This document shows positions 1 through 50,048 of a DNA stretch of 64,000 nt, one piece after another; positions within the stretch are counted from its first letter, which is position 1, and every line of letters starts with the position of its first letter. Where the stretch lies: assembly GCA_965644315.1 (NCBI GenBank), contig CBFFRQ010000031.1, positions 434,001 through 498,000 of the forward strand, read 5' to 3'. The position numbers and the translations under genes are program-made. This DNA comes from Caecitellus pseudoparvulus. Lineage: Eukaryota > Protista > Bigyra: Bicosoecida. The notes under the pieces are model-generated. The model ran no database searches. It was not told the DNA's origin and worked only from the letters and a program-made list of their open reading frames with translations.

Positions 1-3000
1 ATTGATGCGACCCCAGCCATACCATCTGCTGTTGCGGCTGAGGCAGCTGCAACGACTGAGGCAGCCATTGGGTCTTGCCCAAGGTGCAGGATGCCCCAGT
101 ACACGCTCGAGCGAGCATCGGCTTGCCAGCAAACTTGCACCTGCTGCCCTGGGGCCAGTGCCACGTAGTCCGCCTCGGTCGCCACGAAGCCATCGAAGGC
201 ATCACTCTCACCAGAGAAGGGAGTGGCAAAGACCCTCCCGGCCGCTGACGCCAGGCGGACACCTGCGCTTGTGGCAGCGTTGGCGGCTGCACCTGGCCTT
301 ACGGCATCGTCGAGGTCCACAGCTGTAGACCCTGCAGTGGATGTGATGAATGCCCCGGTATTGGTGCTGTTCTCGTCATTGGCGTAGGCTGGGTTCGGCC
401 AAATTGGACGAACCTTCACGGTGCGCTCCGTAACCTGGGAAACTGCTGGGGCTGAGCTTGCCACACGCAGAGGCAAATAGGAGGTGTGACGAGCCCCCGT
501 CACGTCTGCGACGACAACCGTGGTCCACACCAGAGAGTCATGGACAAGGGACAAGTCATTGATCTCAATTGCGAGAGAGAGAGTGGTTGCCCGGGACGTG
601 GTGCCCAGAACACCCTCCCCTGACTCGACAAGCGCCACAACGGAGCGCTGGGTCGCGCTTGCAATATCGTACCCACCTGGGCTGGAACCCACAGACCAAC
701 CAACTGCAAAGACGGGAACTTCAGACATCCACGTTCCAGTCAGAGTAAGCTTTGATGCGTCGGACTGCGTAACCACGCCACCGACGTGCGTGCACAAGTC
801 GATCTGCGGAGCAGAGGACGGCCCGCTGTCTGCAGAAGGAAGTTGAGGATGCCACGGAGTGGGGATGATGGCCGCAGCTGTGTGGGGCTGTGGAGGAGCA
901 CGAATGAAGGTAAACCCAGAGGAGGACGTCTGCAAATCTTGGCCAGCCTCCGTGGTTGCTCGGATCAGGGCCCGCAGGCGAGTAGGAGTGGAGCAAGCTT
1001 CAACGTCTGCTTCTTGCGGACAGAGGTCCACAGAAGTCACCACCCCCAAGCTGCTCAACATGGTGTTGGAGGCATCCTTCTCAACGCATGGCAAGGCAGC
1101 GACGGTCAGGTCGGCAGGGAGGGCCACTGCGGTGCGGCGCCCTGGAACGAAGGGCTTCCAAGCCATCACGTCACACATGCCGTCTCTCGAGGACAAGCAC
1201 CACTGGACGTCTCGCAAGTGCATGTGCCACGGCAGAGCGGTGCTAGCATCAACGCCGATGCTTGTTGTGGCATACACAGCCTCGGCGTCCTCATGGAACC
1301 CTGCCCGGGACTCCACGTCCGCAGCTTGCAGGAAGTTCAAGTCTGGCTTGAACACGAGAGAGTTGGACGGACCGGGTGTGCGGCGGACCAGGTCTGCGGG
1401 CGGCAAGACATCCACTGCCACCGACACCGGCACTTGACGTGGCTCGATAAAGAGGCCGGCCGACCACGCCTCGGCCACTGCACCTGCAGCGTTGATGGCC
1501 CGCACGCCAACAGCATACCGCTGCCCTGCAACCATGCCTGTAGCGGAGACTCCTTCAATGACGAGCACTCCGTCGTTGTCCAGGATTGCAGAGCTGGGGA
1601 GGTCTACCCACGGTTGCAGCGCGCTCCCGCGGGATGCGTCCAGCGCCACAGTGTACTGGTAGCCGACGATGTAGCTGTCTGGCTCGACAGCCAACGGGAC
1701 ATAGGCAGCAACACGCTGACCTTCAATTGCCGCCGTGTCGCTCCTGAAGCCAGCAGCCGCAACTACCTGCAGTTCCGAGCGAGCACTTGCGACAGTTGAT
1801 GCAGCCAGGGCCACGAACCGAGGCAGTTGCAGCTGGGGAGGGGTGGTATCCACGGTCAACGTGCCAACACGGCTCCAAGCTGACAGGCCATTGCAGGCCG
1901 TCGTGCGCAGCCAAACAGACCCAAGAGATCCTTGCGTCATCGTTACCGAAACAGTCACAGTATCAGCAGGCGCGTACGCGTTGCCTTCAGCGCTGGTGGG
2001 GACGGCAGCGAGCTGGGCCACAGGATCGCTGAAGGCCTGATCGAAAGCTGCTGCAGCGTCGGTGTCCGACTCAGCGTAAAGCCAGGCAGCGCTGGCATCC
2101 TGCTTGAAGTGGGTTGCGTAGAACACGAACAGCTCCACTTTGCAGACGCCTGCTGGGTGAGCATGCGGGGATGGCTCTTGGCTGTCCATCCAGGTTACCG
2201 AGAACGTTGCGTTCACATCCGGTGAAACCAAGTCATGCCCTTCCACGCCACCGCTCCAGGCACGTAGGGACACCGTATGGGATTGCAAAGATCGTTGGCT
2301 GCGCCTTGACAGCACGCGCCTCCTGTTCGCAACCACGCCGACCTCGCGCTCCGTGTTCAGGGCTGTGACAAGCGCGGCCACGTCAGACACAAGGCGACCC
2401 CTGGCAGGCCTGGGGGCTTGTCCGTCAACGATAACAGTCGCAGCATTGCTGGTCGCTGACAGCCCGACAGAGTTTGTGCAGCGCAGCAAGACGTGTACGG
2501 CTCCCTCAGTGCCCACGAATGCGGCTGGTCGTGCTAGCTGCAGAGTATGGTGTTGCGAGCTTGAAGAGCCAAGAGTCAAAGGAGCCCAGGCACCAGCACC
2601 GCACTCTGTCGCAGACTTCGCGTAGACACACGTCTCATAGGTCTGCACTGGCACTTCAGCGTCCACACAAGGCGAGAAAGCGATCTGCACTGGAGATCCG
2701 AATTGTACCGCTGTGCCGACCACTCGAGTGGCAAGCCCTTCCCCAATGCCTGATCCAGAGACGTCTTCAGACCCTTGTGGCGTGAGAGCATTGTTGCACC
2801 CAACGCAGACGCCAGTTGCAGGGGATGGGGGTGTACTATCCAGCACCACCATGCTCGAAGTTAGCACCAATGCACCCCCAGCAGCATCTGTCGTGCGGAG
2901 TTGGGCCCGCACGAAGACTGGCACCGAGAAGTTGGCCCCTGTTCGGTGGATGACTGGCAGACTCACGTTCGCGTGCAGTGGAGGCTGCGGGGCTGTGGGA

Positions 3001-12000: not shown

Positions 12001-12935
12001 TCTGTCCAGTCGCTCCAAGCCATTTCAAACGTGTTCGTGTACCTGTAGTAGCGAGTCTGGCCATCAGGCCCGGGCCCCACGAACGGCTCTGGGACTGCCG
12101 GAACAGCTGGCGTCAAGTCCAAGCGCACGGCAATGCTGCGCACAATGTTGCGCACGCCGCGGCTGTTTGCACTGGAAATGAGAACAAAGTAGTCTGTGTC
12201 GGGGAACAGCAGTTGGGCGGGTGCACCAGTGCTTATGTCAATGAATGTGTGGCTCACGGTGTCTGGGCTCTTGGCGGACAAGGCATCAGGCAGGTCCAGG
12301 CGATCCCAGTGGGTTGCAAGGTCTTCCAGCAGCGGAGCGGTTGCAGCAACACCTGTGAGGGTGAAGCCGTTGCCAGCATTGAAGCTTGCAGCGGCAGCAG
12401 GTGAAGAAGTCAAGGCCAGCGTCACGTTGCGAACCTCTGCACCCGGCGTAAACTCTTGCACCAGCAGTTGCACAGTCAAACTGCGCACGTCAGAGACCCA
12501 CACGTAGCTTGGGTCGCCGCCTTGCAAGCGTCGTCCAGCGATAGACAGGAGGCGGCGGCTGCTTAGGTGGGCTCCTGCCGGCATGGTAGTTGTGCCTGTT
12601 TGCAGCGCCATGGACGTGACGCTGGGTGCTTTCAGCGTCAAGGTGACAGGGTCGGACGGACGTGCGGCCCGCAAGTTGACGCCGTTCACTGCGTAGCAGG
12701 TGGCGACCGCAGCCTTGCCATCGGCACCAGCCGGCATGGGCAAGGAGAGCGACTTGCTCTCGCCCATGCTCACGCAGTCGGCAAGCGACTCAGAGCCAGG
12801 CGCTGTGCCGAGGCAAGCGAGGTAGTCTGCGACACCCGTTTCGGGGTCCTCTGCCGCATCCCATGTGATGAGAAGGTTGGCTTCATCAACTTGGCGCAAA
12901 TCACAACGCGTAGAAGGAATGGGGGGCGTCTTGTC
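1..12935 (-). repeat. Protein-level tandem array of degenerate FN3/Ig-like beta-sandwich modules in gene A
   Basis: Recurring consensus DxTPP...WxxxxDxESG[IV]xxY...GTxPG...NxAGL...SDGxxxDxTPP. Examples: DKTPP..WDAAEDPETGVADYLACLGTAPG (~12790-12935), WSDWTDPESGIAWYEW (~11970-12015), YVTAWNGAGLFVTAPTSGVVLDDTPP (~10715-10790), VNKAGLMSAALTDGIEVDTTPP (~8795-8860), VNSAGLVSTWYASDGLVLDTTPP (~7510-7580). No DNA-level repeat is visible. Confidence 0.8.
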
Positions 12936-15900
12936 AGGAGGCTCAAAGCGCAGCGTGAGCACGTCAAAGCGTAGGCGGTCCATTGCCCACCTGAACAAAA
13001 CAACCTCTTTTCGATCACAGAATGTCAGCCATGGGATCTTAATGCACACTTTCACGAATCCAACCTTTGCACATTGATCGACCAGCTTAATGCAGCCTCG
13101 GAATTGGTAGAAGACAAAGAATCGAATGTCCAGCGGGTCTACAACGAGGTCCACGTCAAACGTCACTGCCAGGTCACCACTGTCACGAAGTGTCAAGATG
13201 GCGGCTGGCACAAACGCAGTCCGCAGCAAGATTGCCTCCACACCGACGCCTCCCTTGACGAGAAAGACGTTCACTGCAGCGGTGGCTCCGACGGTGGCCC
13301 ATGCCGAGGGAATCAGCGCACCCACCACGGTCTTGTCCGCTGGACACAGCGCGAACTCGTACCCTAGCTGCAGGGAGATGCTGCCGTACGCTTCGAAGGT
13401 CACAGGGACGACAACGATGATGATGGTCTTCGTGACGCTGAAGAGCTGATAAGTTTCACTCCAAATCACCCCGGCACCGGTCAAGCAGGAAGCCAAGTCG
13501 ACGTAGCCGTCAGGGAGGTACTCCACGTCAGCGAGGGACCGGCCCGAGCGCACGACCCGACCAGACGAGGCAAGGTGGCGAGCAGACTTGATGCCCGCCA
13601 AGGGTGCCGTCGCAGGCCCCTGCAAGCCAAGGCGTGCAGAGTTCAGAGGACGCACCCACTTTGTCCCCACTGCTCCATGCGTACTCCTGTGCACCTTGGT
13701 CAAGTCCGCTGACAGGAGACCGGGAACTGGTGCAGAACTAGCGGTTCCTTGTGCAGCAACGGCATGAGCGTCGTGGTAAGCAGTCGACGCAGCATGGCGA
13801 CTCGAGGCCAGGGCACGAGAAGCTGGGGTCATATGGCGAAGCCTGCGATCTCCAGGGGGGGTTCGAGAATCCTTGCTTGGGTCCTCTGTGTCCCCGGCAG
13901 TGCCGCTGTTGCAATCGGGGCCAATGTTGACGATGCACTTGGGACCATACACATACGACCCTAGCCACTTGAAGAAGATAGTGTTCTCGGTGATGGAGGC
14001 TGGGATGGTTTCAGCCACGGGGGGGCGCACTCTCATGAGCCGATCCTCGACGTCTGCCTGTGCCTCCCGCACCCGTGGGAGAAACTCCTGCGACGCGCTC
14101 GTCCACAAAGTGTACATGTACCGCTCTCCATCGTAGAAAAGGGAACGCAAGCCTTGTGGCGCCCGCAAGACCACAAGGACAGGGTGGTGCTCCTCCTTGC
14201 CGAGGTCAGCGAGCACGGCCGGCATGGCTCCAAAGTCCTCGCCTGCGGCCGAAGGCAGGTCGGTTCGTGAAACGTCTACATCATGCACCACGGCGATGTT
14301 TGATTCGACGCCCGACCTCAAGGTGGACGTGGCCAACGCGATGTAATTGAAGCCGATCATGTCGTAGAAGGCCATGCCGGTGGTATGTGGCGGCAAGGCG
14401 ATGGTGTGAGCACCCCGCAAGACATCTACTCCGTCTACGCTGTACATCGTGCTGTCATCAGGAAGGCCTGAGAACAGCAAATCCAAACCAACAGCGGTGC
14501 TGCGGAGCAACCCCGTTCCGCCCTTCTGGCCAGAAGGGGGAGCGCCTGGATGGTGGGAGGGCGCGGCCAGCGTGACGACACCGTCCCCTGGCCGAGCAAC
14601 ATCCTCTCCGACGTACAAAGTACCCCCCCCCAGTTCAGTCCTGTTGTAGGCCAGCCAGGACGCGCGGCTGTCCACGCGCCACCTGTACGCTTGTGCACCA
14701 AGGATGGATGTGGCCATGGAGTCCGAGCCAACTTCCAGGGTCCCAACTCCTGCAGCGTTCAGCGTGGAAGTGAGCTGGCTCAACGGGAAGGCCCACAGCT
14801 CACCGCAGCGTTCTGCATCACTGAGCTCGTCGCCTTCTGGAGCTTCGGATGTGATGAAGATGAAGTCCTCAGCGATGCTGAGCCCTCCAGCTCGCATGGT
14901 TGAACCATTGACAGCCACCCCATGCTCATCAGCCAAGGTGTAGATCTTGTGCACTTCGTTGGACTCTTGCTTGTGCACGACAAGCAAGACAAGGTTCCCA
15001 TGCGACGAAGCCTGCAGTTTGTTGGGCCGTAGCAGGCTGAGTGGGTACACATTGGTCTCACAGCTGAACGGTCCAGAGGGGCAGTGCTCGTAGGCTGCTG
15101 TGGCAGTGGGAGTGTAGTCTTCGTACAGCCCTGACAGGGTCCACTTCATCGTCTTTGACCCTGTTTGCACCAGAGCGGCAGACGTCGCATCCCACAGCAT
15201 CGTGTACCTGGTGGGGAACAAGATGTCACGGTACACCCAGCCTGATCGAGGTTCTTGCCGCACGCAGCCTTCGCCTGGCGCGGCAGTGCCGCACGCAGGC
15301 GTGTCCTCGGGTGCAGGCAGTGCCTTGGTGTTGTCAGAGATGCCAATGACCTCTTGCACCTTGGCAACAACGGCCCGGATAATATCGAACACTCGTCCCA
15401 GGCCAGCCACAAGTGACTGTACAGTGGGAGCGTGCTTCTCGATGAAATCAAAGAAGCGATCCAAGAAACTGCCTTCCCGAGTGGCGGTCTTCTTCAAGGC
15501 AGCAATGGCTTTCTCCTCCAGCAGCTGGAAGGGGGCAGAAAGATCTTGAGCCGCTGACAGGTACTGCACGACCTGCTGCACTTTACCAGACATGTCTTGG
15601 GCTTTGGCAAGGAAGTCGCCCAACCCCACCGCCTCGAACAGGGAGGCAGAGATGGAAATCTGACCATCGAACTTCATGACGAATTCCTCAACTTGGTCCA
15701 CTTTTGGGACAACTTGGTCGACGAGGACACCTCGCACTCCCGTCACAATGCTGCGGGCTTCCCCAGTCACCTTCGTGACGGTTTCCCCAATTTCAATGAC
15801 AAACTCCAAGACGCGCTCCAGAGTCACGTTGGCCAGAATGGGCCCCAACTCCAAGCTGCCCAGATTCCGTCCATGGGTAGAGACAACCACCAGTGCTTGG

Positions 15901-18900
15901 CCTTCAGTGGAATGCAAGGGCACTGCGGATAGCGCACGGCCATGTGGAGCCGAAGGGTCCAGCAGGAACCCCGCCACTTTGCCAACGACTCGCAGGACCT
16001 GATCCAACGCAGGTCCAATCAGCTCATCTAAGCCAGACATGACGCTGTCCAGATGAGGCATGAAGTTTGCCAGGCGCCCTTGAAGGTAGGTTGCGGTGTC
16101 CACCGCCTGAATCACAGGGTCCAGTCCATCTGCCAGCCTGCCGAGCTGGGAATGCAGCGCAGCACGGTGACAGGAGGGCGCCGCTGCATCTGCACACACG
16201 GCGTGAGTGTAGTTTGCCAGCAGTCCAGGCAGGAGCTCTCCTAGCGAGTGGACTTCGGGAATGCCCTCCACGAAGGATTTCATGATGCTCAAGGCCCGAG
16301 GCAAGACACCGATCATGGCCTGGCCCTCGGCAACAACCCTCTCAATGGGCCTGAGCAGGCCGCGAACCTTGTCCACTGTCTCAAAAACGTCTCCGAACAA
16401 AGAGCGAAGGATCTGGCCGCTCTGCGCGACCTCAAGCACAGCTGTGGCTTGGTCCACCACTTTACGAGTAACGTTGATGGCCTTTCCAAGGGGCTCCTGA
16501 AGCGGGGCCAAGGCAGATTTCACCGCAGGGGCAATGAGGGAGCGCAAGCGGGTCATGAGGGCATCGGAGAGAAGCTCAAATGGGTCCAGTGCCTCGGCCA
16601 TGCTCAAATAGTGGTCCACTTTGTCTGACAACTGCCCAGCGATGTCATGCACAAAAGCAGGGGCGAGGGAAGTGGCAGCCTGGACATGGCCGACGATGGT
16701 CTCTGCCAACGCTGCCGTGGCAGTGTGGTTTGAGATGGCACCCAGAATAGTGTCCAGAATGTCCACACCATCCAGGACTCCATCAAGCACTTTCTTGGCA
16801 GTGCCGACGACGTTGCCAACCTTGGACCTGTCTGCGCCTTCCTCGAGCCTGGAAATGATGCCATCCAGGACGCCCACAACAGTGGCCGCGGACTCCAGTC
16901 CGTTGAGGATGCCATCCATTCGAGCTCGTACGTCTGTCAGCACGCCAATCAGCTTCGAATTGCGCAACTTTGCGACGGCACTCATGACTTTCTCCACAAC
17001 TGCAGCTGCAAACGAGTCCAGCGCCTCCTTACCCTTCATCACGAGGCCCGTTGCAGTGGAGTTGAATGCAGAAATGCCGCTCTCAGCGAGATCTCGCACC
17101 TTGGATAGGAAGCGCTTGTGCAGATCGAGGAGGCCTCGATCATCAAGGGCTTGCTTGATGCGGCCCAGCACTTGCTCCTCTACGAAGCCGATGACAAAGT
17201 CCACGATGGCGTCTCCCTGCAACAGCGTGTCCACGGTATCGGCGACCTTGTCAACTATTGCCACACCGCGCTGGATGGCATCCGTGGCGGGCATGATGAA
17301 CTCCTGCACCTTGGCCTCCACCACATCAATCTTGTCAAACACCCACTGGATCTTGTCGTCAATCCACCGTGTCAGGTTCCCTTCAGAGAGCTTGGTCAGC
17401 AGTTTAGGAGGAATGATATTCAAGAGTGACATGAACTTGGACAGTCGAGACTTCGCTTGCACCAGCAAATTGAATACTCGGCTGTTTGCGACGAGCAGGT
17501 CCAGTTTGGGCCCGAGACCATTAACTGCAGCCACCAAGCGGGGCCAGGCATTGCCGAGTTCTGCCGCAGCGATGACTTTGTCAAACTTTGGCGACATGAG
17601 CGGGGCTGAATCCGCGACCTCTCGAGCCAGGCGCTGCAAGTTCACGAGTTGCGCGCGGATGAGAGGCAGAATACTGCCCACGCGAGCAATACCCGCATTG
17701 GCGATGGGGGCAATTGCCTGCACTCGTCCCTCCAGGCGAGCAGCAGCGCTGTTGGCGGCCTCACGCAAGGCTTCTTCCACAGCTGCTTGGGCCGCTGGCG
17801 AGAGGGCCGGGAAAAGGCTGTCTGAACCGTCTGCGAGCGGGGGGGGGAGCGCTTGCAAGCGGCGACCACCTCCTACTCCTCCCCCACCGAGCAAGTCAAG
17901 CCCAGCGCTGGCCAAGGCACCAAGAGGTCCACTTGAGCCGTTCACTTCTAACCCAGCTACCCCAGATGAACCCAGTGCCAGGACTTCAGGGGGGATGTTC
18001 AGCAGCTCTGAGAAGAAGCTCGCAGCATCTCCAGTAAGGTCTTGTGACGAGAACAGGGGCGAGAGGTCATGGAATAGCTTGCGAGTGGCATTCGCCATGG
18101 CTGCAAAGGGATGCTCCATGTGCTGCATGTTGCGCAAGGTCTGCAGGGTGTCCAGTATGCTACTGGCCATAGTGGTGACCTTCTCTGCAATAGGCTCCAC
18201 CTTGGACAGAGTGTTGTCCACCCAGTCCACCATCTTGTTGGCAAAGGCGACTCCTTGTCGTGTTACGTTCACCAACCTCATGATTTTCGGGCGTACCCGG
18301 TCAGTAAAGTTCTGGGAGATCCGCAGGGCTAGATCTCGGTCGCCGTTCAGGAAATCGTCCACGGCAGTGGTCACATTCGTTATCGTGCCCAGCACCTTCC
18401 GTACCTTCGGCATGGCCTGCAAGCTGGACATGAGACGCTCTGCAGCCCCTGCGGCCAGCTCCGAGACATCAAACATGCCGAATACCGTGTCAATGAGCTC
18501 CTCGCGATCTGAGAGGGCATCTGACAGCGGAACGACATAGTCATCGTACACTTGCATGATGTCTCTGATTGAGAAGGACAGGGGGCCCAGTGTGACATCC
18601 AAAATGCCGCTGACGTAGTACAGCCCACGGGCGATGTTGTCGCCGACGATCTTGTTGAACTGCCGGATGAGGTCAAGGGGAATGAGAGATTTGTACGAGA
18701 AGCCGGCCCGGAGGGCCAGCCTTGCATGAACGACGTCAAACTCGAAGCCAAAGGCCCACGCACCGAGCCTGAACTCGTTGTTTATGTTCAGGTCAAACAG
18801 GCCTCCGAACAGGCCGATACGGAGCAGCACCATGTTGGTCAGGTCCACAAAGCCACCTGCGCCAATCTTGGACCCACCAAACTTCTTGCTCCACTGGTTG

Positions 18901-21900
18901 CTCTTGCCGAGCTGGATGTCAATGAGCGTCGCAGTGATGAGGCGCCGCCGGGCGACCCAAGGAACCTGTGCGTTGCCACTGGCAACCCCAGCAGACTCAA
19001 TGCCCCCAGTGCCGTTGCCAGACAGGACAACGCTTCGCAAGCCACGGGACATTGCCGCTGTCATGGCTTCGGCCTCACTGACAACCTCGTGCGGCAGTCG
19101 GTCAAGCCACCACCGCGCTGCGGCGCCTCGCACTTGTGCCGTCGTGCCGCAAGCAGCAAAACACTCCTGCCTGCATCGCTTCAAGCGGGGATGGGGGCAC
19201 ATGTCTTTGACACAACGAGCAGCGCATGAGAGGGGCTGAGCTTCAGTCAGCCCAGCAACATCAGACAAGATGCCCTGCAGCGTGTGCTTGGTGGTAAAGT
19301 GAACCTGCTCAAAGCCCTTGAGAGCATCCAAGGCACTCTTGCGAATGGACAGTGCTGTACCAGAGGAGGCCAGAGCTGTGAGGAGGACGAACTCCGCAGG
19401 GTCTGCTGTCATGGCGCAGTGCCCAGAAAAGGCACAGAAGAGCTCTTCCTCCACACCCAATGCCCATGGGACGCCGCCGTCCGCAGAGGTGCGATCATGC
19501 TCTCTGTGAGCCGTCATTAAGGCCAAGCACAGCGCATGCTCCGCGCTCATGTGCTGCGCATGCTGCACACCTTCCCACACGGCCCGCTGCATCTCGGTGT
19601 TGTCCGCTCCAGGGGTCGCCATATGGTGGCATCGAGCCTGGAGCGACTCTTTGCTCAAGTCAACACCCAGGTCTGCCCAGGCCACGTCTTCATACCTGCG
19701 CAAGCTGTAGACAGCTGCCTCTGCAGCAGCCACGGAAGGATGTGTTGTCGATAGCAGTAGAGCAGGCAACACGCGCAAGCCACCCGCATTGCCGAGGGCC
19801 ATAACCGTCGCTGCAAGTGTGTGGAATGCTGGCGTGTCGCTGTCATCGGCTGAGAAGCGCGAAGACAGCAAACGCCGGCCGGAGGGGGGACTTGGTGGTG
19901 CTGCAGCAGCTGCCAAAGCTAGCTGTCGACGGACGTGCTTCTCCATGGTGGGATGAACCTGCCCGTCAAGAGCTTTGCCTTGCAGCACCATGCCCATGGT
20001 GAATGCGGCACTGGACTCCCAGACATGCTCCATGGCAGCGTGGCCGACCTTGGCCTCCGCACCCGCCTCCTCTGCCCCAACTTGCCGCACAGCTGCCCGC
20101 CACTGCAGGCGCCGCTCAGTGGTCTGCTCAGACAACAGCTCTGCGCCAGCGTGGAATGCAGCATCAACACGTGGCTGGTGAACCAAGTGGTGTTCGCGCC
20201 AGGCTCCTTGCCAGTCCAACAGCAAGGACTCAATCGCCGCATCTGCCGCAGCAGCCAGCGCAGGGCTCTGTTCGGCGGGCAGCACCGCCAGCAGAGTGCC
20301 AAGCGTGGCCGACGCCTGCATGGCCACTTCAGGCGACGGGTGCATCGCGGCAGCCTGTTGCACAGAATACAGCACCTCTGCTGTGATGCGTGACGGGGCA
20401 AGTTGGTGCAGCGACAACAACGCATCAGCTGCATCGGTGGCCAGCTCGATGTCCGCCAGCGTGGAGTGTACGTGGGAGCAGTGGGCAGGCAAAGCAATGT
20501 CCCACAAATCCTCCATGGCCTGCTCATCCCAGCCCACACAGTGCAATGGGCTGAGAGGCTCCAAGGAGGTTTCAGCTTCGAGTGCTGCGGCCGCCGCTGT
20601 ACTTGCTGAGATGAGGGTCGTGATGGCGTCCACAGCAGCAGGGAGTGGTGACAGGGGCAGAGCGCTGATCATGGCAGCACGGGTAATGGTGGACCCCAGA
20701 GCGTCCAGGTCGTGCAGAGCCTGTGCGCCTGTGCGGTGTTGCCGGACGTGAGTGGCAGACTGCAGTGGCCCATGCACTTGTGCCGCAAGGCCACAGCTGG
20801 GATGGGAGCCCCACCAGGAGAGGGACTCGTGCACCGTGTCTGAGAAAACCACGTCGCCTGGCTGCATGGCCGCCGCTAGTTGCACGTACGGCGTGAGCAC
20901 CGTCCCCGCAGCCGCTTCAAGGAACATCCCATTCACATCGCGAAGGCGCAGCATGTTATGCAAGCCCACTACGCAAGCCGTGTTTGTGGAGTTTTCCTGG
21001 CGGCAAGCCATGAGAGCAGACAGTCGAGCACATGCGCTCCTCAGCTCTGAGTGCTCTGAAGTGGGCACATGAAGCTCACAAGCGGAGCTATCGCTGGCAG
21101 CGCACCTTGCACTTAGACCTCTCAGAGCTCGGCGGTGCGGCTGGATGTGTTGTGTGGCTGCGGCACGCCGGTCCTCCATGGCCTGCTGGGCTGAAGCGGC
21201 GGCGGGGACGGCACGATGGATATCGGCCTGGCCAGTCTCAGACATGCCCACGACTTCTTTCATGCCCCTTCCATGGTTGGAAGCAACGTGGGCGTCATTT
21301 GGGGCCGTCTCGACCTCAGGTGCCAGCGAGGCGGCGACAAGGTGGCGGCCTCTCACACTCACGTCCTTCCCGGCTTCAGCGTCGCTTGGCACGCTTGCCA
21401 GGACTGAGAGCAGTCCGTCGATAACACCTTCATGCCAGAGATCCAATTCTTCCAGTTCGTCTATCACGTGGGCGTCTTTGGCCAGCAACGTGCCAACAAG
21501 GGAGCCACGTGTTGAGAAGGCAGTGTTCTCGTGGGCCAGCTCCTGCTCCGGTGTCGGCTCGGCAAGGTGCCGGCCATGGCGCGGCGCATGTGGCGGAGCA
21601 TGTTGGGCAGGAGGGAGGGAGACAGAGTGCTGCATGGTAAACGCTGCGACACTGCCTTCCTCCGTGAGCTTGTGCTCGCGCACGAGCTTGGATGCAAGGT
21701 GCCGAGCGGAGGGCTGAGCGCTTTGCGTGATTGCCGCCTCGTGCACAGCAAAGAGAGAAACGCATTGCTCGGTGGCACAGGACACAACACTTGCAGAAGC
21801 GCGCATGTCCATGTGCCCATTGCCGTCAGCTTGGCGGACATTGAACTTGACTTCCCCTGGCGCCCCCTGATTCAACAGCCGTGCGGGGGTATGCACGCCT

Positions 21901-22499
21901 TCTGCGTCTTGCGGCAGCGCATGTTGCAGTGCAGATAGCATACCTCGCTTCATGGACATGATCTGTGCACGAAGATGGAGCGGCCAAGTTTGGCGGGCTG
22001 CAGACTGGGGGCTTTGCAGTTCACGTACTTCTTCGGGAGTGACGGAGGCGTGTGGCCACACAACCTTGCCGATGGTTCCGTTGGCGTGCCACTGGAAGTA
22101 CACAGGCTGAGCCATGTCTTCTCGTGGCCAGTCATCAGCATTTTGCAGCTCTTGGTGAAGCGCAACGCCGGTGGCAGCGTCCACCGGGGCAAAGGACTGC
22201 ACCAGCAGAGCCCACCACTCGGCCTGTTGCGCCGGTAGTTGAAACGCTGCCGGGGCATGCTGTGATGCAGTGCGCTCGAGGTTGAGTACGGAGACGACAC
22301 CACGAAAAGCTTGTGTGTGCAAGACAGCCTCATCTCCAGCCAAACGCTGATGTGCCAGGGACACATCGAGAGAGTACTGAGCTGCATACAACGCGCTTCC
22401 GATGGAGTGGACGTGGCTCGTGGGTGAATGTTCTGCACTCGCGCAGTGGACAAAAGCGGCGCCCCAAGCACAAGCAAGAAGCAACAGTAGAGGACCCAT
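1..22499 (-). CDS. Giant secreted protein A (>=7,499 aa, 3'-partial, no intron needed): signal peptide + vitellogenin/MTP-like LLT module + amphipathic helical region + beta-propeller + tandem FN3/Ig-like repeats
   Basis: ATG at 22499 lies downstream of an in-frame TGA at 22539-22541. Manual translation begins MGPLLLLLACAWGAAFVHCASAEH (signal peptide). The ORF track lists no minus-strand ORF in this frame between 1 and 22499, so the frame has no stop. The many plus-strand ORFs starting at 3n+1 are its antisense shadows. LLT motifs: PVYFQWHANGTIGKVVWP (22053-22106), MSMKRGMLSALQ (21924-21959), ALGNAG (19782-19799), AAVYSLRR (19695-19718). Confidence 0.9.
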   Translation of the reverse strand, partial: MGPLLLLLACAWGAAFVHCASAEHSPTSHVHSIGSALYAAQYSLDVSLAHQRLAGDEAVLHTQAFRGVVSVLNLERTASQHAPAAFQLPAQQAEWWALLVQSFAPVDAATGVALHQELQNADDWPREDMAQPVYFQWHANGTIGKVVWPHASVTPEEVRELQSPQSAARQTWPLHLRAQIMSMKRGMLSALQHALPQDAEGVHTPARLLNQGAPGEVKFNVRQADGNGHMDMRASASVVSCATEQCVSLFAVHEAAITQSAQPSARHLASKLVREHKLTEEGSVAAFTMQHSVSLPPAQHAPPHAPRHGRHLAEPTPEQELAHENTAFSTRGSLVGTLLAKDAHVIDELEELDLWHEGVIDGLLSVLASVPSDAEAGKDVSVRGRHLVAASLAPEVETAPNDAHVASNHGRGMKEVVGMSETGQADIHRAVPAAASAQQAMEDRRAAATQHIQPHRRALRGLSARCAASDSSACELHVPTSEHSELRSACARLSALMACRQENSTNTACVVGLHNMLRLRDVNGMFLEAAAGTVLTPYVQLAAAMQPGDVVFSDTVHESLSWWGSHPSCGLAAQVHGPLQSATHVRQHRTGAQALHDLDALGSTITRAAMISALPLSPLPAAVDAITTLISASTAAAAALEAETSLEPLSPLHCVGWDEQAMEDLWDIALPAHCSHVHSTLADIELATDAADALLSLHQLAPSRITAEVLYSVQQAAAMHPSPEVAMQASATLGTLLAVLPAEQSPALAAAADAAIESLLLDWQGAWREHHLVHQPRVDAAFHAGAELLSEQTTERRLQWRAAVRQVGAEEAGAEAKVGHAAMEHVWESSAAFTMGMVLQGKALDGQVHPTMEKHVRRQLALAAAAAPPSPPSGRRLLSSRFSADDSDTPAFHTLAATVMALGNAGGLRVLPALLLSTTHPSVAAAEAAVYSLRRYEDVAWADLGVDLSKESLQARCHHMATPGADNTEMQRAVWEGVQHAQHMSAEHALCLALMTAHREHDRTSADGGVPWALGVEEELFCAFSGHCAMTADPAEFVLLTALASSGTALSIRKSALDALKGFEQVHFTTKHTLQGILSDVAGLTEAQPLSCAARCVKDMCPHPRLKRCRQECFAACGTTAQVRGAAARWWLDRLPHEVVSEAEAMTAAMSRGLRSVVLSGNGTGGIESAGVASGNAQVPWVARRRLITATLIDIQLGKSNQWSKKFGGSKIGAGGFVDLTNMVLLRIGLFGGLFDLNINNEFRLGAWAFGFEFDVVHARLALRAGFSYKSLIPLDLIRQFNKIVGDNIARGLYYVSGILDVTLGPLSFSIRDIMQVYDDYVVPLSDALSDREELIDTVFGMFDVSELAAGAAERLMSSLQAMPKVRKVLGTITNVTTAVDDFLNGDRDLALRISQNFTDRVRPKIMRLVNVTRQGVAFANKMVDWVDNTLSKVEPIAEKVTTMASSILDTLQTLRNMQHMEHPFAAMANATRKLFHDLSPLFSSQDLTGDAASFFSELLNIPPEVLALGSSGVAGLEVNGSSGPLGALASAGLDLLGGGGVGGGRRLQALPPPLADGSDSLFPALSPAAQAAVEEALREAANSAAARLEGRVQAIAPIANAGIARVGSILPLIRAQLVNLQRLAREVADSAPLMSPKFDKVIAAAELGNAWPRLVAAVNGLGPKLDLLVANSRVFNLLVQAKSRLSKFMSLLNIIPPKLLTKLSEGNLTRWIDDKIQWVFDKIDVVEAKVQEFIMPATDAIQRGVAIVDKVADTVDTLLQGDAIVDFVIGFVEEQVLGRIKQALDDRGLLDLHKRFLSKVRDLAESGISAFNSTATGLVMKGKEALDSFAAAVVEKVMSAVAKLRNSKLIGVLTDVRARMDGILNGLESAATVVGVLDGIISRLEEGADRSKVGNVVGTAKKVLDGVLDGVDILDTILGAISNHTATAALAETIVGHVQAATSLAPAFVHDIAGQLSDKVDHYLSMAEALDPFELLSDALMTRLRSLIAPAVKSALAPLQEPLGKAINVTRKVVDQATAVLEVAQSGQILRSLFGDVFETVDKVRGLLRPIERVVAEGQAMIGVLPRALSIMKSFVEGIPEVHSLGELLPGLLANYTHAVCADAAAPSCHRAALHSQLGRLADGLDPVIQAVDTATYLQGRLANFMPHLDSVMSGLDELIGPALDQVLRVVGKVAGFLLDPSAPHGRALSAVPLHSTEGQALVVVSTHGRNLGSLELGPILANVTLERVLEFVIEIGETVTKVTGEARSIVTGVRGVLVDQVVPKVDQVEEFVMKFDGQISISASLFEAVGLGDFLAKAQDMSGKVQQVVQYLSAAQDLSAPFQLLEEKAIAALKKTATREGSFLDRFFDFIEKHAPTVQSLVAGLGRVFDIIRAVVAKVQEVIGISDNTKALPAPEDTPACGTAAPGEGCVRQEPRSGWVYRDILFPTRYTMLWDATSAALVQTGSKTMKWTLSGLYEDYTPTATAAYEHCPSGPFSCETNVYPLSLLRPNKLQASSHGNLVLLVVHKQESNEVHKIYTLADEHGVAVNGSTMRAGGLSIAEDFIFITSEAPEGDELSDAERCGELWAFPLSQLTSTLNAAGVGTLEVGSDSMATSILGAQAYRWRVDSRASWLAYNRTELGGGTLYVGEDVARPGDGVVTLAAPSHHPGAPPSGQKGGTGLLRSTAVGLDLLFSGLPDDSTMYSVDGVDVLRGAHTIALPPHTTGMAFYDMIGFNYIALATSTLRSGVESNIAVVHDVDVSRTDLPSAAGEDFGAMPAVLADLGKEEHHPVLVVLRAPQGLRSLFYDGERYMYTLWTSASQEFLPRVREAQADVEDRLMRVRPPVAETIPASITENTIFFKWLGSYVYGPKCIVNIGPDCNSGTAGDTEDPSKDSRTPPGDRRLRHMTPASRALASSRHAASTAYHDAHAVAAQGTASSAPVPGLLSADLTKVHRSTHGAVGTKWVRPLNSARLGLQGPATAPLAGIKSARHLASSGRVVRSGRSLADVEYLPDGYVDLASCLTGAGVIWSETYQLFSVTKTIIIVVVPVTFEAYGSISLQLGYEFALCPADKTVVGALIPSAWATVGATAAVNVFLVKGGVGVEAILLRTAFVPAAILTLRDSGDLAVTFDVDLVVDPLDIRFFVFYQFRGCIKLVDQCAKVGFVKVCIKIPWLTFCDRKEVVLFRWAMDRLRFDVLTLRFEPPDKTPPIPSTRCDLRQVDEANLLITWDAAEDPETGVADYLACLGTAPGSESLADCVSMGESKSLSLPMPAGADGKAAVATCYAVNGVNLRAARPSDPVTLTLKAPSVTSMALQTGTTTMPAGAHLSSRRLLSIAGRRLQGGDPSYVWVSDVRSLTVQLLVQEFTPGAEVRNVTLALTSSPAAAASFNAGNGFTLTGVAATAPLLEDLATHWDRLDLPDALSAKSPDTVSHTFIDISTGAPAQLLFPDTDYFVLISSANSRGVRNIVRSIAVRLDLTPAVPAVPEPFVGPGPDGQTRYYRYTNTFEMAWSDWTDPESGIAWYEWRFKDVSTGVWQSDWAKVDSTTTSVSLTGLHLINKHAYRGYLRITNGAGLAKTVPTDFDVQVDRDAPTCGGGAFDEHPAGLTATLADGPIGATQEGAGASLDIDAAFYLPSLAGTFKCADDISGVALYRAGAGRIRGTDDVAGFTDVVPDPLPVRNDAWRPATAWPPSVDPISVWVQTGALSPQHGSKYFLAAEVTDLAGWINRAASDGVIYDETQPQYYHPRLVDLPVSTASDYEIAASNMALADTPAEAFSLYAANPTHLDLKYIGLAGSLEEAFGLASPAGGAGSPGTPKTASWGVTWYAAFSDPQSFIADHVSVCVGSAAAAARVPALYTEVQKGWFEDAAGELNRTAALLRMMPKFDWCDVLPPRLVRFRAYSAMLRDIPLMPGDTYTTYVTAWNGAGLFVTAPTSGVVLDDTPPVPDSAALSAALPGTAKMPAGASVISTAPQAVTYPEHGGDITATQYTTFAALTFASTDLESGMSQAFLGLYRREDESAADSPVCDGPQPPAGYELLGNWVRVDLPSADVLPGEDLPVTSVTALTMSITGSLLGSSPLSHGQRYVWAVKPISGAGNIARAPQCSAGFTVDTTAPVVTSITDGPGADDVDLLSLAEDDFHVIQVRFTVSDLETDVQQLFVGVSDTPGGNALTGGWEQVAIANVFHTQLAAEVALGALAGPGVVGYFVQPAPVRKTGLAWVGADPVVAAGSSGATLHLYIRLPNPVAGGRPWFTSVKAVNEAGGAGIATSDGFAVDALRPATGFVTLAGVAQHGVWLPELTKLEVAWSGFTDMKPVQPAEHQSAVNRPGSAPVFRSLSPLELYAVCLSSAPNATCDISPTSVITPSGLTLPKGASRSAEGNLLSPDEAASLGAGVVSVSPGLPLAQTIALPDGPTAFKGVPDGTLMYAVVRAQDQAGQQSLPGLSVPVGLDTSPPVVGSAVDGPTPAEDRAFIWTTDVAHIAWWGFSDPHSGMADYGISLDTREGQNLAPYRSVGVPPVRLAPEPVGVDPAPGAAPGMPYHVASIRGLTLEHGDSFVATVNGVNKAGLMSAALTDGIEVDTTPPSCLVEAQIPPYAASSGGPASPSAPLTPSDIAVSAASWAASHNDTLPVAWVCSDDESGMRAVWYAVGTTPGGDDVVAWAFVGPSGEGQHLPSDARFLPSPGAYYYVTLAAQNGAGRLVYTDPVEVSFDFSPPTVTVLGAALEGSAMLVHAAHPDNFTAVSSPHALGTLTELAIPVRWALRDEGTGIAGAWLGVSTNALPPVAEDGTGGSDWFPDASTDGWTPLPAATEGAGTTTLNVSVVTAGPASPTALDGTRLYIMLVAVSGSGVPVYTSPAVPLHLDSTPPVCTHVGDGAIPGVDLDATSITTMAVVNAQCSDVHSGVSAVRYTVLGLPTASNPTPSQAIDAVVAGLAADDGSVFVNIAPSLDTMEAAFASGVPSPALPQAKPVLASVTALEPASTFFGLVSVVNSAGLVSTWYASDGLVLDTTPPVITISSTPELYVQPGDAVSVEWDVSDSQSDLLTCNATALNVLGEVVAVATWTAPAATSAASPDASLAIPADMPDASLSVEIWCLNEAGLGQTAVAGVVTVDSSLPSLQQAMPVAVLAPEDYSGQAGYLSDQQVTGAALSISLASLADPQSRISSVRFRAGGPGVIAGAGVWFTLSSGAPLGTAGSPVTLTTPATLELANGSFVHMEVEATNGAGIALAWTSPSVLVKLGGLTPGAVFAVCDGYASVSSPWDAGLEGDEVIGSVAMEAAALLQAPCAIQRSGDGVWGAWGGFSDPVGGAAGIQYELGVAAVPSLTAPLPDDLLKSPNVVPFVPLGTEVSGGALAQGVNLKPGSFAAYVLVVRASSLGAAVYVPSQLFTVDSAAPTVFAVIPHASSSSADVPAAAASAAPFLADAEVRLPGSGLATEQLPPVRGITSSDSPAVTWAVQDLDSRVETVFMAWGTAPFSDTIMPFTDVASLSSEDAPLIGPVQAGGAAMAELWTWHASMARSVDLTKAKLLVAPGYYKEDQVPALHGALRDGMDQLTNLDSFFSEGDVLYATIIAQDASGLLSSKVSTHALVLDESQAVAGWARTIVHPGRAGDLAVSSLHADTSATPSDPGVLLPHPEATVVHAVSNGTGEALGMTWGDFSDEESGIWYYEWAVGSTPDADDVLPWQAVPSSIRSVVESSPGQAVQAAVDLGLEQVFVTLRATSGLGMQPVVVVSPPVDILRTHISPSPGFVGVVGGLDLWSSQSREDNAAGAPVQRLGGVKVRMVNPAGAVTIGWQGIFDPASAPPSTVRVCLVTATALRGALGNEASASASLAELASAAARSKLWTGPAAPLPPCDGSSVELLAAPVSSGRVFVKDVAAGIVGHPLFAVVVGEDAAGWRAAAVAKDVVTIAPPSGDVSVLPGQVKVVTHATAAALTAAGPLGSEAGLRRMIAAKPATATSEARLSVAWYGFRVSSESAGGESSLLKSIAGFTWSLCRLNDLRARPVTLAGRGVYNYRPDIADASLAADCPIVGRKVSADAGAFVPGAALIDFVIPTSIAPGQYVAHVTGWAATGAAAAAVSAPVLIDGSHPTVGMVSDTHSISQATMGDANGHVLGAPSASQARALAAAQAALGAHAPTESDTGRVSWVALPPTLPAGSTFAATWVGFDDADSQPLGSDPAYVELRWCLTTLPVNAGAATVRASGDPGSALRQSAATLAEDVACNIRDWETVPNGLRRVSAPVTSGQWTSMRTAAAAEPGVKLVTAVEACNAAGTCAVGLSDGVRLDATAPTSAGLELLTVSGAAAHAWRGALPPSLAGKVEEPVFSPSVDSVGIFLPGVADPESGLSSASAVLVVTLPGAPSSIVASDVRPLHELLTAGAGAASGGAELYLGGDLRSQGVPDGALVHVVVSVHNGAGAELRLVSRPIVVAGAGPRLTSPAPGLANNKSAVWLQGPSGRLTALPANVADSVSVAWDASKLDFPHAPLASMAVRLCEGDEVACSSPWSSLYSAHDPTAPQPPLHANVSLPVIHRTGANFSVPVFVRAQLRTTDAAGGALVLTSSMVVLDSTPPSPATGVCVGCNNALTPQGSEDVSGSGIGEGLATRVVGTAVQFGSPVQIAFSPCVDAEVPVQTYETCVYAKSATECGAGAWAPLTLGSSSSQHHTLQLARPAAFVGTEGAVHVLLRCTNSVGLSATSNAATVIVDGQAPRPARGRLVSDVAALVTALNTEREVGVVANRRRVLSRRSQRSLQSHTVSLRAWSGGVEGHDLVSPDVNATFSVTWMDSQEPSPHAHPAGVCKVELFVFYATHFKQDASAAWLYAESDTDAAAAFDQAFSDPVAQLAAVPTSAEGNAYAPADTVTVSVTMTQGSLGSVWLRTTACNGLSAWSRVGTLTVDTTPPQLQLPRFVALAASTVASARSELQVVAAAGFRSDTAAIEGQRVAAYVPLAVEPDSYIVGYQYTVALDASRGSALQPWVDLPSSAILDNDGVLVIEGVSATGMVAGQRYAVGVRAINAAGAVAEAWSAGLFIEPRQVPVSVAVDVLPPADLVRRTPGPSNSLVFKPDLNFLQAADVESRAGFHEDAEAVYATTSIGVDASTALPWHMHLRDVQWCLSSRDGMCDVMAWKPFVPGRRTAVALPADLTVAALPCVEKDASNTMLSSLGVVTSVDLCPQEADVEACSTPTRLRALIRATTEAGQDLQTSSSGFTFIRAPPQPHTAAAIIPTPWHPQLPSADSGPSSAPQIDLCTHVGGVVTQSDASKLTLTGTWMSEVPVFAVGWSVGSSPGGYDIASATQRSVVALVESGEGVLGTTSRATTLSLAIEINDLSLVHDSLVWTTVVVADVTGARHTSYLPLRVASSAPAVSQVTERTVKVRPIWPNPAYANDENSTNTGAFITSTAGSTAVDLDDAVRPGAAANAATSAGVRLASAAGRVFATPFSGESDAFDGFVATEADYVALAPGQQVQVCWQADARSSVYWGILHLGQDPMAASVVAAASAATADGMAGVAS

Positions 22500-22745
22500 G
22501 AATCTTCCTTCCTGCTTCGTTGATGAACGTTCCAAGATTCAAGTCCTTTCGGCCGGGAGAGATTGCGCCGGTGGCACTGCAGGCTATGCTGACGGGCAAG
22601 GGACTGTCCTGAGCCAGACCAGAGGAGGACGCTGAGCGCAGGCACAACCCCAAGTAGGGGAATGCAAGTCTGATTGCATTCGTTTTGTTCATCACCGCGA
22701 TCTGGTGCTTTGTGCCTGCTTCGACAAGTCTCGAGAGTCAACGAT

Positions 22746-22756
22746 CAATTTCCGCA
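22746..22756 (+). promoter_or_regulatory. CAATTTCCGCA candidate promoter element upstream of gene A
   Basis: Exact copy of the recurrent 11-mer, about 250 nt upstream of the gene A ATG, in the opposite orientation. Confidence 0.4.
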
Positions 22757-50044: not shown

Positions 50045-50048
50045 CTTC

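Follow-up and report, generated by a model that had tools for sequence, protein, structure and literature searches.

A giant two-exon gene of a marine protist encoding a putative membrane-anchored surface protein with a long FN3-type stalk

The minus strand of the window (the whole 64,000-nucleotide stretch of DNA analysed here) carries the 5′ part of a 28,959-bp gene, C31:427541-456499. We consider, with a probability of about 0.6, that this two-exon gene encodes a type-I transmembrane surface protein of 9,652 codons. The gene is transcribed and spliced and is under strong purifying selection. The evidence supports a real, expressed, giant extracellular protein with a long stalk of beta-sandwich type behind its signal peptide. 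The protein is probably one member of a lineage-restricted family of giant proteins, whose other members were read from open frames.

Translation of the reverse complement of window positions 3-22499 gave 7,499 codons with 0 stops, while the remaining two minus-strand frames contain 246 and 205 stops over the same span. The 22.5-kb stop-free frame described in the first-pass annotation was thus recovered, and a search for an in-frame stop found 0 between positions 3 and 22499. Past the left window edge the frame extends for 2,153 more codons (~6.5 kb), up to a stop at C31:427541-427543. The total of 9,652 codons agrees with the length of at least 7,499 residues given earlier. The leftward extension, which had been proposed as a way to find a stop and an anchor, revealed both, the latter as one transmembrane helix. 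The gene begins as follows (window coordinates):

22497-22499, minus strand: ATG start codon, preceded 13 codons upstream by an in-frame stop (22539-22541)
22434-22499, minus strand: signal peptide, residues 1-22 (MGP, Leu-rich core, ASA|E)
22029-22499, minus strand: exon 1, codons 1-157, with the motif PVYFQWHANGTIGKV...TPEE at its 3′ end
21963-22028, minus strand: in-phase intron of 66 nt, GTACGT...CACAG, corresponding to open-frame codons 158-179
1-21962, minus strand: window part of exon 2, codons 180-7499 plus 2 bases, with 6.46 kb more leftward

The intron was identified from one X2 contig that skips exactly positions 21963-22028, a segment whose ends read CT..AC on the plus strand. With codons 158-179 removed, the mature protein would be 9,630 residues long, and the position of the intron places the two N-terminal motifs previously ascribed to a beta-barrel on separate exons. 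The RNA evidence is confined to the gene's first 6 kb; its source is contigs assembled for related strains, and one of the runs is only guessed to be RNA. Within this part, contigs of the marine metatranscriptome X1 (mostly 90-99% alike) match 16.8-22.4 kb of the window; together with the spliced X2 contig they serve as evidence of transcription. DNA contigs of run X3 match parts of the same 6 kb, with depth in every bin. A eukaryotic SSU rRNA and the spliceosomal intron show that the genome, earlier described as protist-like, is eukaryotic. A kinetoplastid origin, at first suggested by the gene order, is unlikely: at about 1,700 nt the SSU rRNA is short by kinetoplastid standards, and the intron is spliced in cis. 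The host genome is that of a marine protist, small (30.6 Mb) and GC-rich, and the genes of the giant-protein family in it are almost intron-free.

A second copy of the gene, on a different contig, C57, keeps an open frame of ~9,540 codons across exon 2. Comparison of the two copies gave pN/pS of 0.02-0.16 at pS of 0.10-0.20 (0.11-0.16 for residues 23-330). The greatest divergence is seen at the intron site, where the C57 copy has 65 nt. That the frame arose by chance, or belongs to a pseudogene or to a chimeric assembly, is next to impossible. Nothing beyond the missing database homologues speaks for it, and it is contradicted by 0 stops in 9,652 codons compared with ~200-250 per 7,500 in other frames, by the low pN/pS and the frame kept in the C57 copy, and by the spliced X2 contig and the X3 contigs with depth in every bin. 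In addition, at least four paralogous loci with frames of 9,300-13,500 codons were found in the genome, on C36, C34 (two), C66 and C2. The C36 paralog is collinear with the C31 protein from residue 1034 onward, and the exon 1 layout is common to the paralogs on C36, C34 and C66.

Searches for relatives were carried out with the exons taken separately, and the unspliced sequence was used for folding. Pfam and NCBIfam revealed no significant family over all 9,652 residues, most of the protein length having no Pfam family match, and statistically significant domain matches are limited to FN3 and HEAT-like repeats. A phmmer search of residues 1-1200 against 1.84 billion protein representatives returned two matches only, both fragments: one of 173 residues with 91% identity to the C31 protein, and one from a Logan contig with 39% identity, the second half of which appears frameshifted. 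No relatives were found by word-based searches with residues 1030-3740 or with the family alignment A1, and an Atlas feature search with residues 1031-1460 gave no usable match. The protein was divided into the following segments:

21510-22433, minus strand: N-terminal region, residues 23-330, holding motifs at residues 132-146 and 181-192
19275-21497, minus strand: predicted alpha-helical region, residues 335-1075; helices in a low-confidence AlphaFold model
19149-19226, minus strand: segment with six cysteines, residues 1092-1117, a pattern seen again in the aligned C36, C34 and C66 paralogs
18939-18953, minus strand: dibasic motif ARRRL, residues 1183-1187; RR.L at the same position in aligned paralogs
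18645-18938, minus strand: beta-rich module that defines the family, residues 1188-1285, with GLFGGLFDL as its core
15300-18647, minus strand: amphipathic alpha-helix of ~1,100 residues, residues 1285-2400
12930-15299, minus strand: residues 2401-3190, probably beta-rich, parts common to paralogs, with a hydrophobic block at residues 3000-3190
3-12929, minus strand: FN3-type module array from residue 3191 to the window edge, going on leftward; last modules at residues 8324-8555

The signal peptide and the transmembrane helix were both read by eye. The former shows the typical succession of MGP, Leu-rich core and ASA|E, in accord with the earlier description of the start of the frame. A single C-terminal transmembrane helix (residues 9315-9340) is followed by a 312-residue basic tail with NPx motifs. 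It is because of this helix and cytoplasmic tail that we regard the protein as a type-I membrane protein. Of the proposal that the protein is secreted, the extracellular part therefore stands, but a freely secreted protein does not.

The beta-sandwich stalk postulated in the first-pass annotation is supported. According to a local HMM, residues 3191 to 8555 contain 22 FN3-type modules (i-E<0.01). When the repeat profile A8 was compared with PDB, the matches were titin FN3 (7e-18, 1e-8 and 1.4e-7), contactin (2e-4) and gp130 (3e-3). The Pfam fn3 match is sub-threshold (E=0.013).

HEAT-like repeats occupy the end of the helical region, with ALGNAG at residue 901, AAVYSLRR at 928 and IRKSALDAL at 1052; in a C34 paralog, two repeats lie ~33 residues apart. 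The family profile A2 (residues 885-1075) matched in PDB alphaRep (E=4.5e-5 and 0.027) and CpcE (0.27), further matches being importin-alpha and CAND1. The Pfam HEAT model reaches only E=0.12 (residues 716-739, 13 bits against a cut-off of 23.5), so the assignment is limited to the level of profile against PDB. At that level, below the Pfam cut-off, the helical motifs fit HEAT-like repeats.

The first-pass annotation had assigned the N-terminus to the superfamily of large lipid transfer proteins (LLTPs). Its five quoted motifs were each found once and in the order given, at residues 132, 181, 901, 928 and 1052. The lipid-transfer module itself received no statistical support: Pfam, phmmer and PDB profiles gave no LLTP match, and in a motif scan the N-terminal sites stayed at background level. 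The suggested Pfam check with Vitellogenin_N (PF01347) gave no match at E<=10 on residues 1-1500, five sub-pieces, single exons or the N-termini of paralogs. A six-frame scan of the whole genome with the same model was also negative, with the controls equally silent. No lipovitellin, MTP, apoB or honey-bee vitellogenin was found by phmmer with residues 1-1300 against PDB at E<=10, and no lipovitellin, MTP or apoB chain was found in PDB with family profiles built from exon 1 and from the exon 2 start. The search against 1.84 billion proteins contained no LLTP, nor was any match obtained at E<=10 among 8,000 candidates sharing words with residues 1-1300. AlphaFold2 models were unusable because of low confidence: pLDDT was 40 for residues 1-1200 from a single sequence (with residues 23-330 at ~30 and without secondary structure) and 37 for residues 885-1470 with 7 aligned rows.

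A divergent form of the LLTP fold was nevertheless weighed as an alternative for this part of the protein. According to it, residues 23 to ~1,300 would be a highly divergent LLT module composed of an N-sheet barrel, the helical domain and the first part of the open beta-sheets; we hold this doubtful. Equally tentative is its extension, in which the amphipathic helices downstream would act like apoB lipid-associating regions and the whole would be a membrane-tethered, lipoprotein-like lipid binder. The corresponding architecture, a divergent LLT module followed by 1,000-4,000 residues of apoB-like amphipathic helix, the FN3 stalk and the transmembrane tether, likewise seems unlikely to us. The module would directly follow the signal peptide, as in secreted LLTPs, and the amphipathic helices downstream are real. 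LLTP motifs N1-N22 have been aligned previously (PMC1783640, Additional file 2). Comparison by eye with that alignment showed motifs resembling N1, N2, N3, N11 and N12, in order and common to the paralogs: behind the signal peptide a strand of Y.Y type (N1), P....NG.[IV] and then K[KR]G[ILM]L..[LM][QH] (N2), a D..G-type motif (N3), [AM][LM]GN[AS]G and then ..P..L (N11), and AV[YF]SLR[RK] (N12). None of N16-N22 was recognised. Across the inferred splice junction of the C36 paralog, 12 of 27 positions match motif N2 of shrimp apoCr, and this paralog also has GNSGHPSF where killifish vitellogenin has GNAGHPSF. Removal of the intron leaves a spacing within N2 that is 2 residues above that of shrimp apoCr.

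In a set-based scan, with residue sets taken from the published LLTP alignment, equal or better matches occurred elsewhere in the same proteins, the N-terminal sites not being the best ones. All four aligned paralogs lack the near-invariant Asn of NIKRG, and N2 and N11 lie ~2 times as far apart as is canonical. All ten of the best named language-model neighbours of residues 1-1300 were HEAT_2/Vitellogenin_N clusters (score 0.77), but this Atlas score lies within the range of shuffled sequences. In favour of an LLT module, the helical region is followed by a conserved dibasic site, loosely reminiscent of the furin site that apoLp-II/I and apoCr have between motifs N19 and N20. Vitellogenin_N went undetected in the protein, its exons and the paralogs, no LLTP appeared among the large protein set, the word-sharing candidates or PDB, and the helical-region profile matched HEAT-like proteins and not lipovitellin, MTP or apoB; all of this counts against an LLT module. 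In A6, a misaligned MAFFT alignment of the unspliced N-terminus with exon fragments of the paralogs, the KRG motif of the paralogs was placed on the exon-1 segment FRGVVSVLNL, a warning that motifs of this kind are not unique. If the head is an LLT module after all, the vitellogenin/apoB/MTP superfamily would be placed outside animals, and with it the origin of lipoprotein and yolk proteins. The module would then also have a wholly new role, that of a membrane-anchored receptor grabbing lipids or membranes.

Between the helical region and the stalk, the GLFGGLFDL module is better conserved than any other N-terminal block, with 49% identity to the C36 paralog over residues 1182-1296; no match to it was found in Pfam, PDB or Atlas. 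In the segment that follows, residues 1335-2400 have a helical hydrophobic moment that exceeds that of shuffles by 10.2 SD, compared with at most 2.9 SD in every other region. The blocks flanking this amphipathic segment are ~4,100-5,200 residues apart in the C34 and C66 paralogs. Residues 2401-3190 gave no significant Pfam or PDB match, and a beta-propeller considered for residues 2400-2830 found no support in either database. A weak match of C34 paralogs to Tiki/ChaN (Cofac_haem_bdg, E ~0.02-0.03) was judged spurious.

The membrane-proximal part contains a GPS-like domain with 54 invariant columns and a CHLT[E/Q]F motif, the C-H-L-T of which is invariant in four family members. The first Cys of the C.C pair is absent, and the motif lies ~385 residues before the transmembrane helix. 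A search of PDB with a profile of the domain gave no GAIN match at E<=10, and a relationship of the CHLTEF domain to GAIN domains, which had been considered, is unsupported there. Weak PKD, fn3 and TNFR-like Pfam matches occur near the membrane; those of PKD type (K319L-like_PKD, 6e-4; PKD_4, 2e-3; PKD, 0.57) are all below cut-offs.

The ARRRL motif is a possible processing site, at which the chain may be cleaved. Accordingly, the product could be a polyprotein precursor, cut at RR.L, at other RRL/RxL junctions and at the GPS-like site into several secreted pieces and a short membrane stub. The recurrence of RR.L at one position in aligned paralogs and the invariance of C-H-L-T across the family are consistent with this, and such processing is common in LLTPs (apoLp-II/I) and in adhesion receptors. 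Short basic motifs are, however, frequent in a protein of 9,652 residues, and we judge a polyprotein improbable. After such cuts the fragments usually stay together, so that cleavage would mostly refine the main explanation and not replace it.

Under the preferred reading, a type-I surface protein, the molecule may serve in adhesion or capture as a receptor of long reach. By our own estimate, its FN3 stalk would place a distal binding head ~100 nm away from the cell. With its amphipathic-helix segment the protein could interact with membranes or lipid surfaces, for example those of prey or substrate, and its tail could provide a link to trafficking or the cytoskeleton. Processing at the dibasic and GPS-like sites might also take place. 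Proteins that approach 10,000 residues are rare, and this one 30.6-Mb protist genome encodes a whole family of them. The molecule brings together a distal head, an amphipathic helix segment of kilo-residue length, at least 22 FN3-type modules forming a stalk, a membrane-proximal GPS-like domain and a tail in the cytoplasm. To our knowledge, long-reach surface receptors have barely been studied in free-living protists, where such a receptor could underlie prey capture, adhesion or gliding.

Several known systems can be compared with the C31 protein. LLTPs (vitellogenin, apoB, apolipophorin II/I, apolipocrustacein and MTP) share with it a module right after the signal peptide, ALGN.G / A..SLR repeats in a helical region that a dibasic site follows, and a long amphipathic segment of lipid type downstream; short motifs of the C31 protein also resemble, by eye and in order, N1, N2, N3, N11 and N12. 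The C31 protein differs from them in having no profile-level similarity in any search, in the missing NIKRG Asn, in a module ~2 times the canonical length, in the lack of DUF1943, DUF1081 and VWD domains, and in being membrane-anchored behind an FN3-type stalk that spans some 5,400 residues. The likeness to PBS-lyase/alphaRep HEAT proteins lies in the profile of residues 885-1075, which aligns with the alphaRep consensus ALG.IGD...VR.AA.AL; unlike in those proteins, the repeats of the C31 protein are extracellular, form a minor part of a giant ectodomain and are separated by insertions of 90-220 residues. With GPS/GAIN receptors (adhesion GPCRs, polycystin-1/REJ) it has in common a membrane-proximal domain ending in ...W...C...Y.V.ICHLT[E/Q]F, candidate PKD-like modules adjoining the motif and a very large ectodomain. 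In adhesion GPCRs and polycystin-1, the GPS is found just before a 7TM or 11TM bundle, whereas in the C31 protein the corresponding motif is well removed from a single helix. The relationship to FN3-rich animal proteins does not go beyond domain type at the sequence level. The array resembles those of titin, contactin and gp130 in its tandem modules of ~100-150 residues, its FN3-matching profile and its presumed role as a spacer or stalk, and differs from them in that its modules carry a signature of their own, W..FSD.ESGI..Y ... VD.TPP.C.

Translation of the reverse complement of window positions 3-22499 yielded one uninterrupted frame, 7,499 codons long and free of stops, as the first-pass annotation had claimed for a 22.5-kb stop-free stretch of the minus strand; the other two minus-strand frames of the same span contained 246 and 205 stops. 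The G+C content of the giant frame is ~0.59-0.63 throughout and ~0.03 stops per codon are expected by chance, as estimated from base composition; chance cannot account for so long an open run. In flanking assembly sequence the frame was found to continue for 2,153 further codons beyond the left window edge, for a total of 9,652 codons (28,959 bp). Features at its two ends are listed below (C31 is the contig that contains the window, at 434001-498000; residues are numbered in the unspliced frame).

22497-22499, minus strand: start ATG of the giant gene, 13 codons past an in-frame stop
C31:427541-427543, minus strand: stop codon of the giant gene
Residues 9315-9340: hydrophobic helix, predicted to be transmembrane, near the C-terminus
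Residues 9341-9652: cytoplasmic tail of 312 residues, Arg/Lys/Ser-rich

The start codon opens a predicted signal peptide (MGP, a Leu-rich core and ASA/E, read from the translation), in agreement with the earlier claim. Leftward extension thus revealed both a stop and an anchor: the near-terminal hydrophobic helix and the basic tail make the product a type-I membrane protein. Of the giant secreted protein originally proposed, the extracellular location with a signal peptide stands, and free secretion does not.

RNA evidence was obtained by placing contigs from three public sequencing runs on window positions 16601-22600. Contigs from a marine metatranscriptome (X1) covered much of this interval, mostly with 90-99% likeness. 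A 1,509-nt contig from a second run (X2), which is only guessed to be RNA, omits exactly 66 nt, whose ends, CT..AC on the plus strand, read GT..AG on the gene strand (junction GAA/GTACGT...CACAG/ATC).

21963-22028, minus strand: intron of the giant gene, 66 nt, in phase, codons 158-179, from the X2 contig

The intron separates the two motifs that had been taken to mark an N-terminal beta-barrel. Because it is in phase and stop-free, the frame appears unbroken. Neither an in-frame stop nor a lack of transcripts was found: the frame holds zero stops, and X1 contigs and the spliced X2 contig lie on its first ~6 kb. A second copy of the gene, with 95-97% DNA identity, is present on another contig, C57. 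At the intron site it has 65 nt, which disrupts its frame unless the intron is spliced out; nowhere do the copies diverge more than in the intron. From exon 2 on the C57 copy is open for ~9,540 codons. We take this as evidence against additional undetected introns, whose indels would have disrupted the frame of one of the copies. Comparison of the copies over residues 36-1800 gave pN/pS of 0.02-0.16 at pS of 0.10-0.20. We conclude that the giant gene is real, expressed, under purifying selection and contains one intron.

Because the synonymous divergence between the copies (0.10-0.20 over window 17100-22394) is very high for alleles, the assembly may contain a pair of diverged haplotypes, stem from a hybrid or reflect a large duplication of recent date. 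A stretch of ~520 bp (window 22397-22913), comprising codons 1-35 with the signal peptide and the entire 5′ flank, is unalignable to C57, though identity is 95-98% on either side. The C57 copy has a hydrophobic N-terminus of its own with a polypyrimidine-CAG sequence immediately ahead of it, suggesting that its first exon is different or that it has an extra one.

Pfam and NCBIfam searches over all 9,652 residues produced no significant match, and family and repeat profiles told more about the architecture. A repeat profile was built from six aligned copies of a unit of ~110-150 residues with the signature W..FSD.ESGI..Y ... VD.TPP.C. In the PDB it matched FN3 of titin (7e-18), as well as FN3 of contactin and gp130. 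A local HMM located 22 FN3 modules at i-E<0.01 in residues 3191-8555 and 30 in total at i-E ≤1, which bears out the earlier proposal of a very long beta-sandwich stalk. With 3.5-4 nm allowed per module (our estimate), a stalk length of some 100 nm would result. The helical hydrophobic moment of residues 1335-2400 was 10.2 SD over shuffled sequence, compared with ≤2.9 SD in other regions of the protein. Residues 1027-1452 form a block common to all paralogs aligned.

Within residues 1027-1452: HEAT-like repeat (IRKSALDAL in the giant protein)
Residues 1092-1117: six-cysteine segment
Residues 1183-1187: conserved RR.L motif (ARRRL)
Within residues 1027-1452: beta-rich module with the core GLFGGLFDL

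The giant protein has a predicted signal peptide, a huge ectodomain, FN3 and HEAT-like repeats, amphipathic helices, one transmembrane helix and a tail. The data support the extracellular location, giant size and beta-sandwich stalk proposed earlier, with the corrections that the protein is membrane-anchored and its gene has one intron.

Paralogous open frames were identified by querying the genome itself with residues 1-1300.

Contig C36: 9,301 codons
C34:103718-141007, minus strand: 12,430 codons
C34:179230-214746, plus strand: 11,839 codons, inverted relative to the former, head to head and ~38 kb apart
Contig C66: 12,340 codons
Contig C2: 13,507 codons

The C36 paralog is collinear with the giant protein from residue 1034 on. 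The C34 and C66 paralogs have in common with it blocks 1027-1452 and ~2670-4000, FN3 modules and a membrane-proximal domain (38-39% identity); their blocks on either side of the helical region lie ~4,100-5,200 residues apart. At their N-termini the paralogs have diverged beyond the reach of BLAST; the gene structure is nonetheless shared: a short exon 1 (signal peptide and ~110-135 residues), a short intron and a giant exon. The C34 pair is 99.7% identical over the first 700 residues and differs at the C-termini, indicative of a recent event, either an inverted duplication or gene conversion.

A HMMER search with residues 1-1200 against 1.84 billion representatives gave two matches only, a 173-residue fragment (91% identical) and a fragment on a Logan contig (SRR7528449) that is 39% identical over residues 264-819 and is the sole distant relative recovered. 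This contig stops short of the conserved family block, and its called protein appears to be misframed in its Ala/Arg/Pro-rich second half. Three word-based searches for relatives outside the genome found nothing. Judged from these searches, almost nothing related exists outside the genome, and the family appears confined to this lineage. The genome is eukaryotic: the eukaryotic model matches its SSU rRNA with 1,701 bits. Another 1.5-kb match to an SSU rRNA model (C213:27842-29337) scores only 451 bits, with much stronger nuclear copies on C81, and could be organellar or a contaminant.

The first-pass annotation had placed at the N-terminus a lipid-transfer head (LLT module) of the large lipid transfer protein superfamily (LLTP; vitellogenin, apoB, apolipophorin, MTP). 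The five motifs it quoted do occur in the expected order, one copy each, at residues 132, 181, 901, 928 and 1052. The Pfam family Vitellogenin_N (PF01347) did not match residues 1-1500 (E≤1), five sub-pieces (E≤10), single exons or four paralog N-termini. A six-frame PF01347 scan of the genome found nothing, its controls being silent too. A phmmer search of the entire PDB with residues 1-1300 matched no chain at E≤10; lipovitellin, MTP, apoB and honey-bee vitellogenin are all represented there. Profiles of the family over exon 1 (A3) and over the exon 2 start (A4) matched no LLTP. The profile around ALGNAG, AAVYSLRR and IRKSALDAL (A2) matched designed alphaRep HEAT-like proteins (4.5e-5 and 0.027) and further phycocyanobilin lyase, importin-alpha and CAND1, with LLTPs absent among the matches; Pfam HEAT matched weakly at residues 716-739 (E=0.12). 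Thus, the three helical motifs are better explained by HEAT-like repeats. The LLTP helical domain is itself made of repeats similar to HEAT-like ones, which is probably why the motifs had seemed familiar. A protein-language-model search with residues 1-1300 returned only bacterial HEAT_2/Vitellogenin_N clusters at a score of 0.77, often reached by shuffles. AlphaFold2 predictions on the unspliced sequence for residues 1-1200 (single sequence) and 885-1470 (seven-row family alignment) had mean pLDDT of 40 and 37, respectively, too low for a fold comparison.

The family was also compared by eye, with the hypothesis already known, with the 22 LLTP motifs (N1-N22) of a published alignment (PMC1783640, Additional file 2). 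Likenesses were seen, in the right order, to N1 (a Y.Y-type strand right after the signal peptide), N2 (P....NG.[IV]....H at the exon 1 end and K[KR]G[ILM]L..[LM][QH] at the exon 2 start), N3 (a D..G-type motif ~15-40 residues further), N11 ([AM][LM]GN[AS]G, then ..P..L) and N12 (AV[YF]SLR[RK]). Across an inferred GTGAGC...CAG intron, the C36 paralog agrees with the N2 row of shrimp apolipocrustacein (apoCr) in 12 of 27 positions when one gap is allowed, and its GNSGHPSF compares with GNAGHPSF of killifish vitellogenin. With the intron removed, spacing within N2 of the giant gene is that of shrimp apoCr plus 2 residues. In a control scan, residue sets derived solely from the published N2, N11 and N12 columns were run along all family proteins. 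The N-terminal sites were not the best: they were equalled or outscored by sites in other parts of the proteins, chiefly the amphipathic region. The near-invariant Asn of NIKRG is absent in all four aligned paralogs, and MAFFT put the paralogs' KRG motif on a different segment of the giant gene's exon 1. Given the by-eye basis of the likenesses, the control scan, the absent Asn and the MAFFT placement, the LLT module is a possibility and not a finding; that the N-terminal region is such a module is unproven, and we consider it unlikely.

The most likely role inferred for the giant protein is that of a long-reach surface receptor or adhesin. Contact with the target, for example substrate, prey or a lipid surface, would be made by the distal head and the amphipathic segment. 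Neighbouring genes in the window are listed below.

22914-36071, minus strand: adjoining upstream gene of 4,385 codons with Cys-rich CP.G..C repeats near its start
50025-51668, plus strand: adenosine-deaminase (editase) domain protein (2.7e-23)
51678-53636, minus strand: class II aminoacyl-tRNA synthetase of the Asp/Lys/Asn type (tRNA-synt_2, 3e-87)
53935-63969, minus strand: open frame of 3,344 codons, extending almost to the right window end

The upstream gene has no BLAST similarity to the giant-gene family. It contains five FN3-type modules of the same kind, and the neighbourhood fits a surface receptor or adhesin. The product of the upstream gene is probably a further giant protein, secreted or on the surface. 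The C-terminus of the 3,344-codon frame (...FVRFVWGRSRLP...) resembles by eye a HECT ubiquitin-ligase domain.

The membrane-proximal part of the giant protein, encoded left of the window, comprises a Cys-rich TNFR-like segment and two FN3 modules. It also includes a domain of ~260 residues that closes with ...ICHLT[E/Q]F and has 54 columns invariant among four family members.

C31:429701-429718, residues 8928-8933: GPS-like motif CHLTEF at the end of the ~260-residue domain, 385 residues before the transmembrane helix

PKD-type Pfam matches near the membrane were weak (6e-4 to 2e-3, under Pfam cut-offs). CHLTEF of the giant protein is reminiscent of the GPS at which adhesion GPCRs and polycystin-1 are cleaved, but the family profile of the CHLTEF domain matched no GAIN domain in the PDB. 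NP[LMI]-type motifs are repeated in the tails of the giant protein (GLNPL, GMNPM, VNPIN) and of the C36 paralog (ANPMA, ANPMR, VNPML) and are possibly adaptor-binding sites. Through its NPL, NPM and NPI motifs the tail might link the giant protein to trafficking or the cytoskeleton, and processing may occur at dibasic and GPS-like sites.
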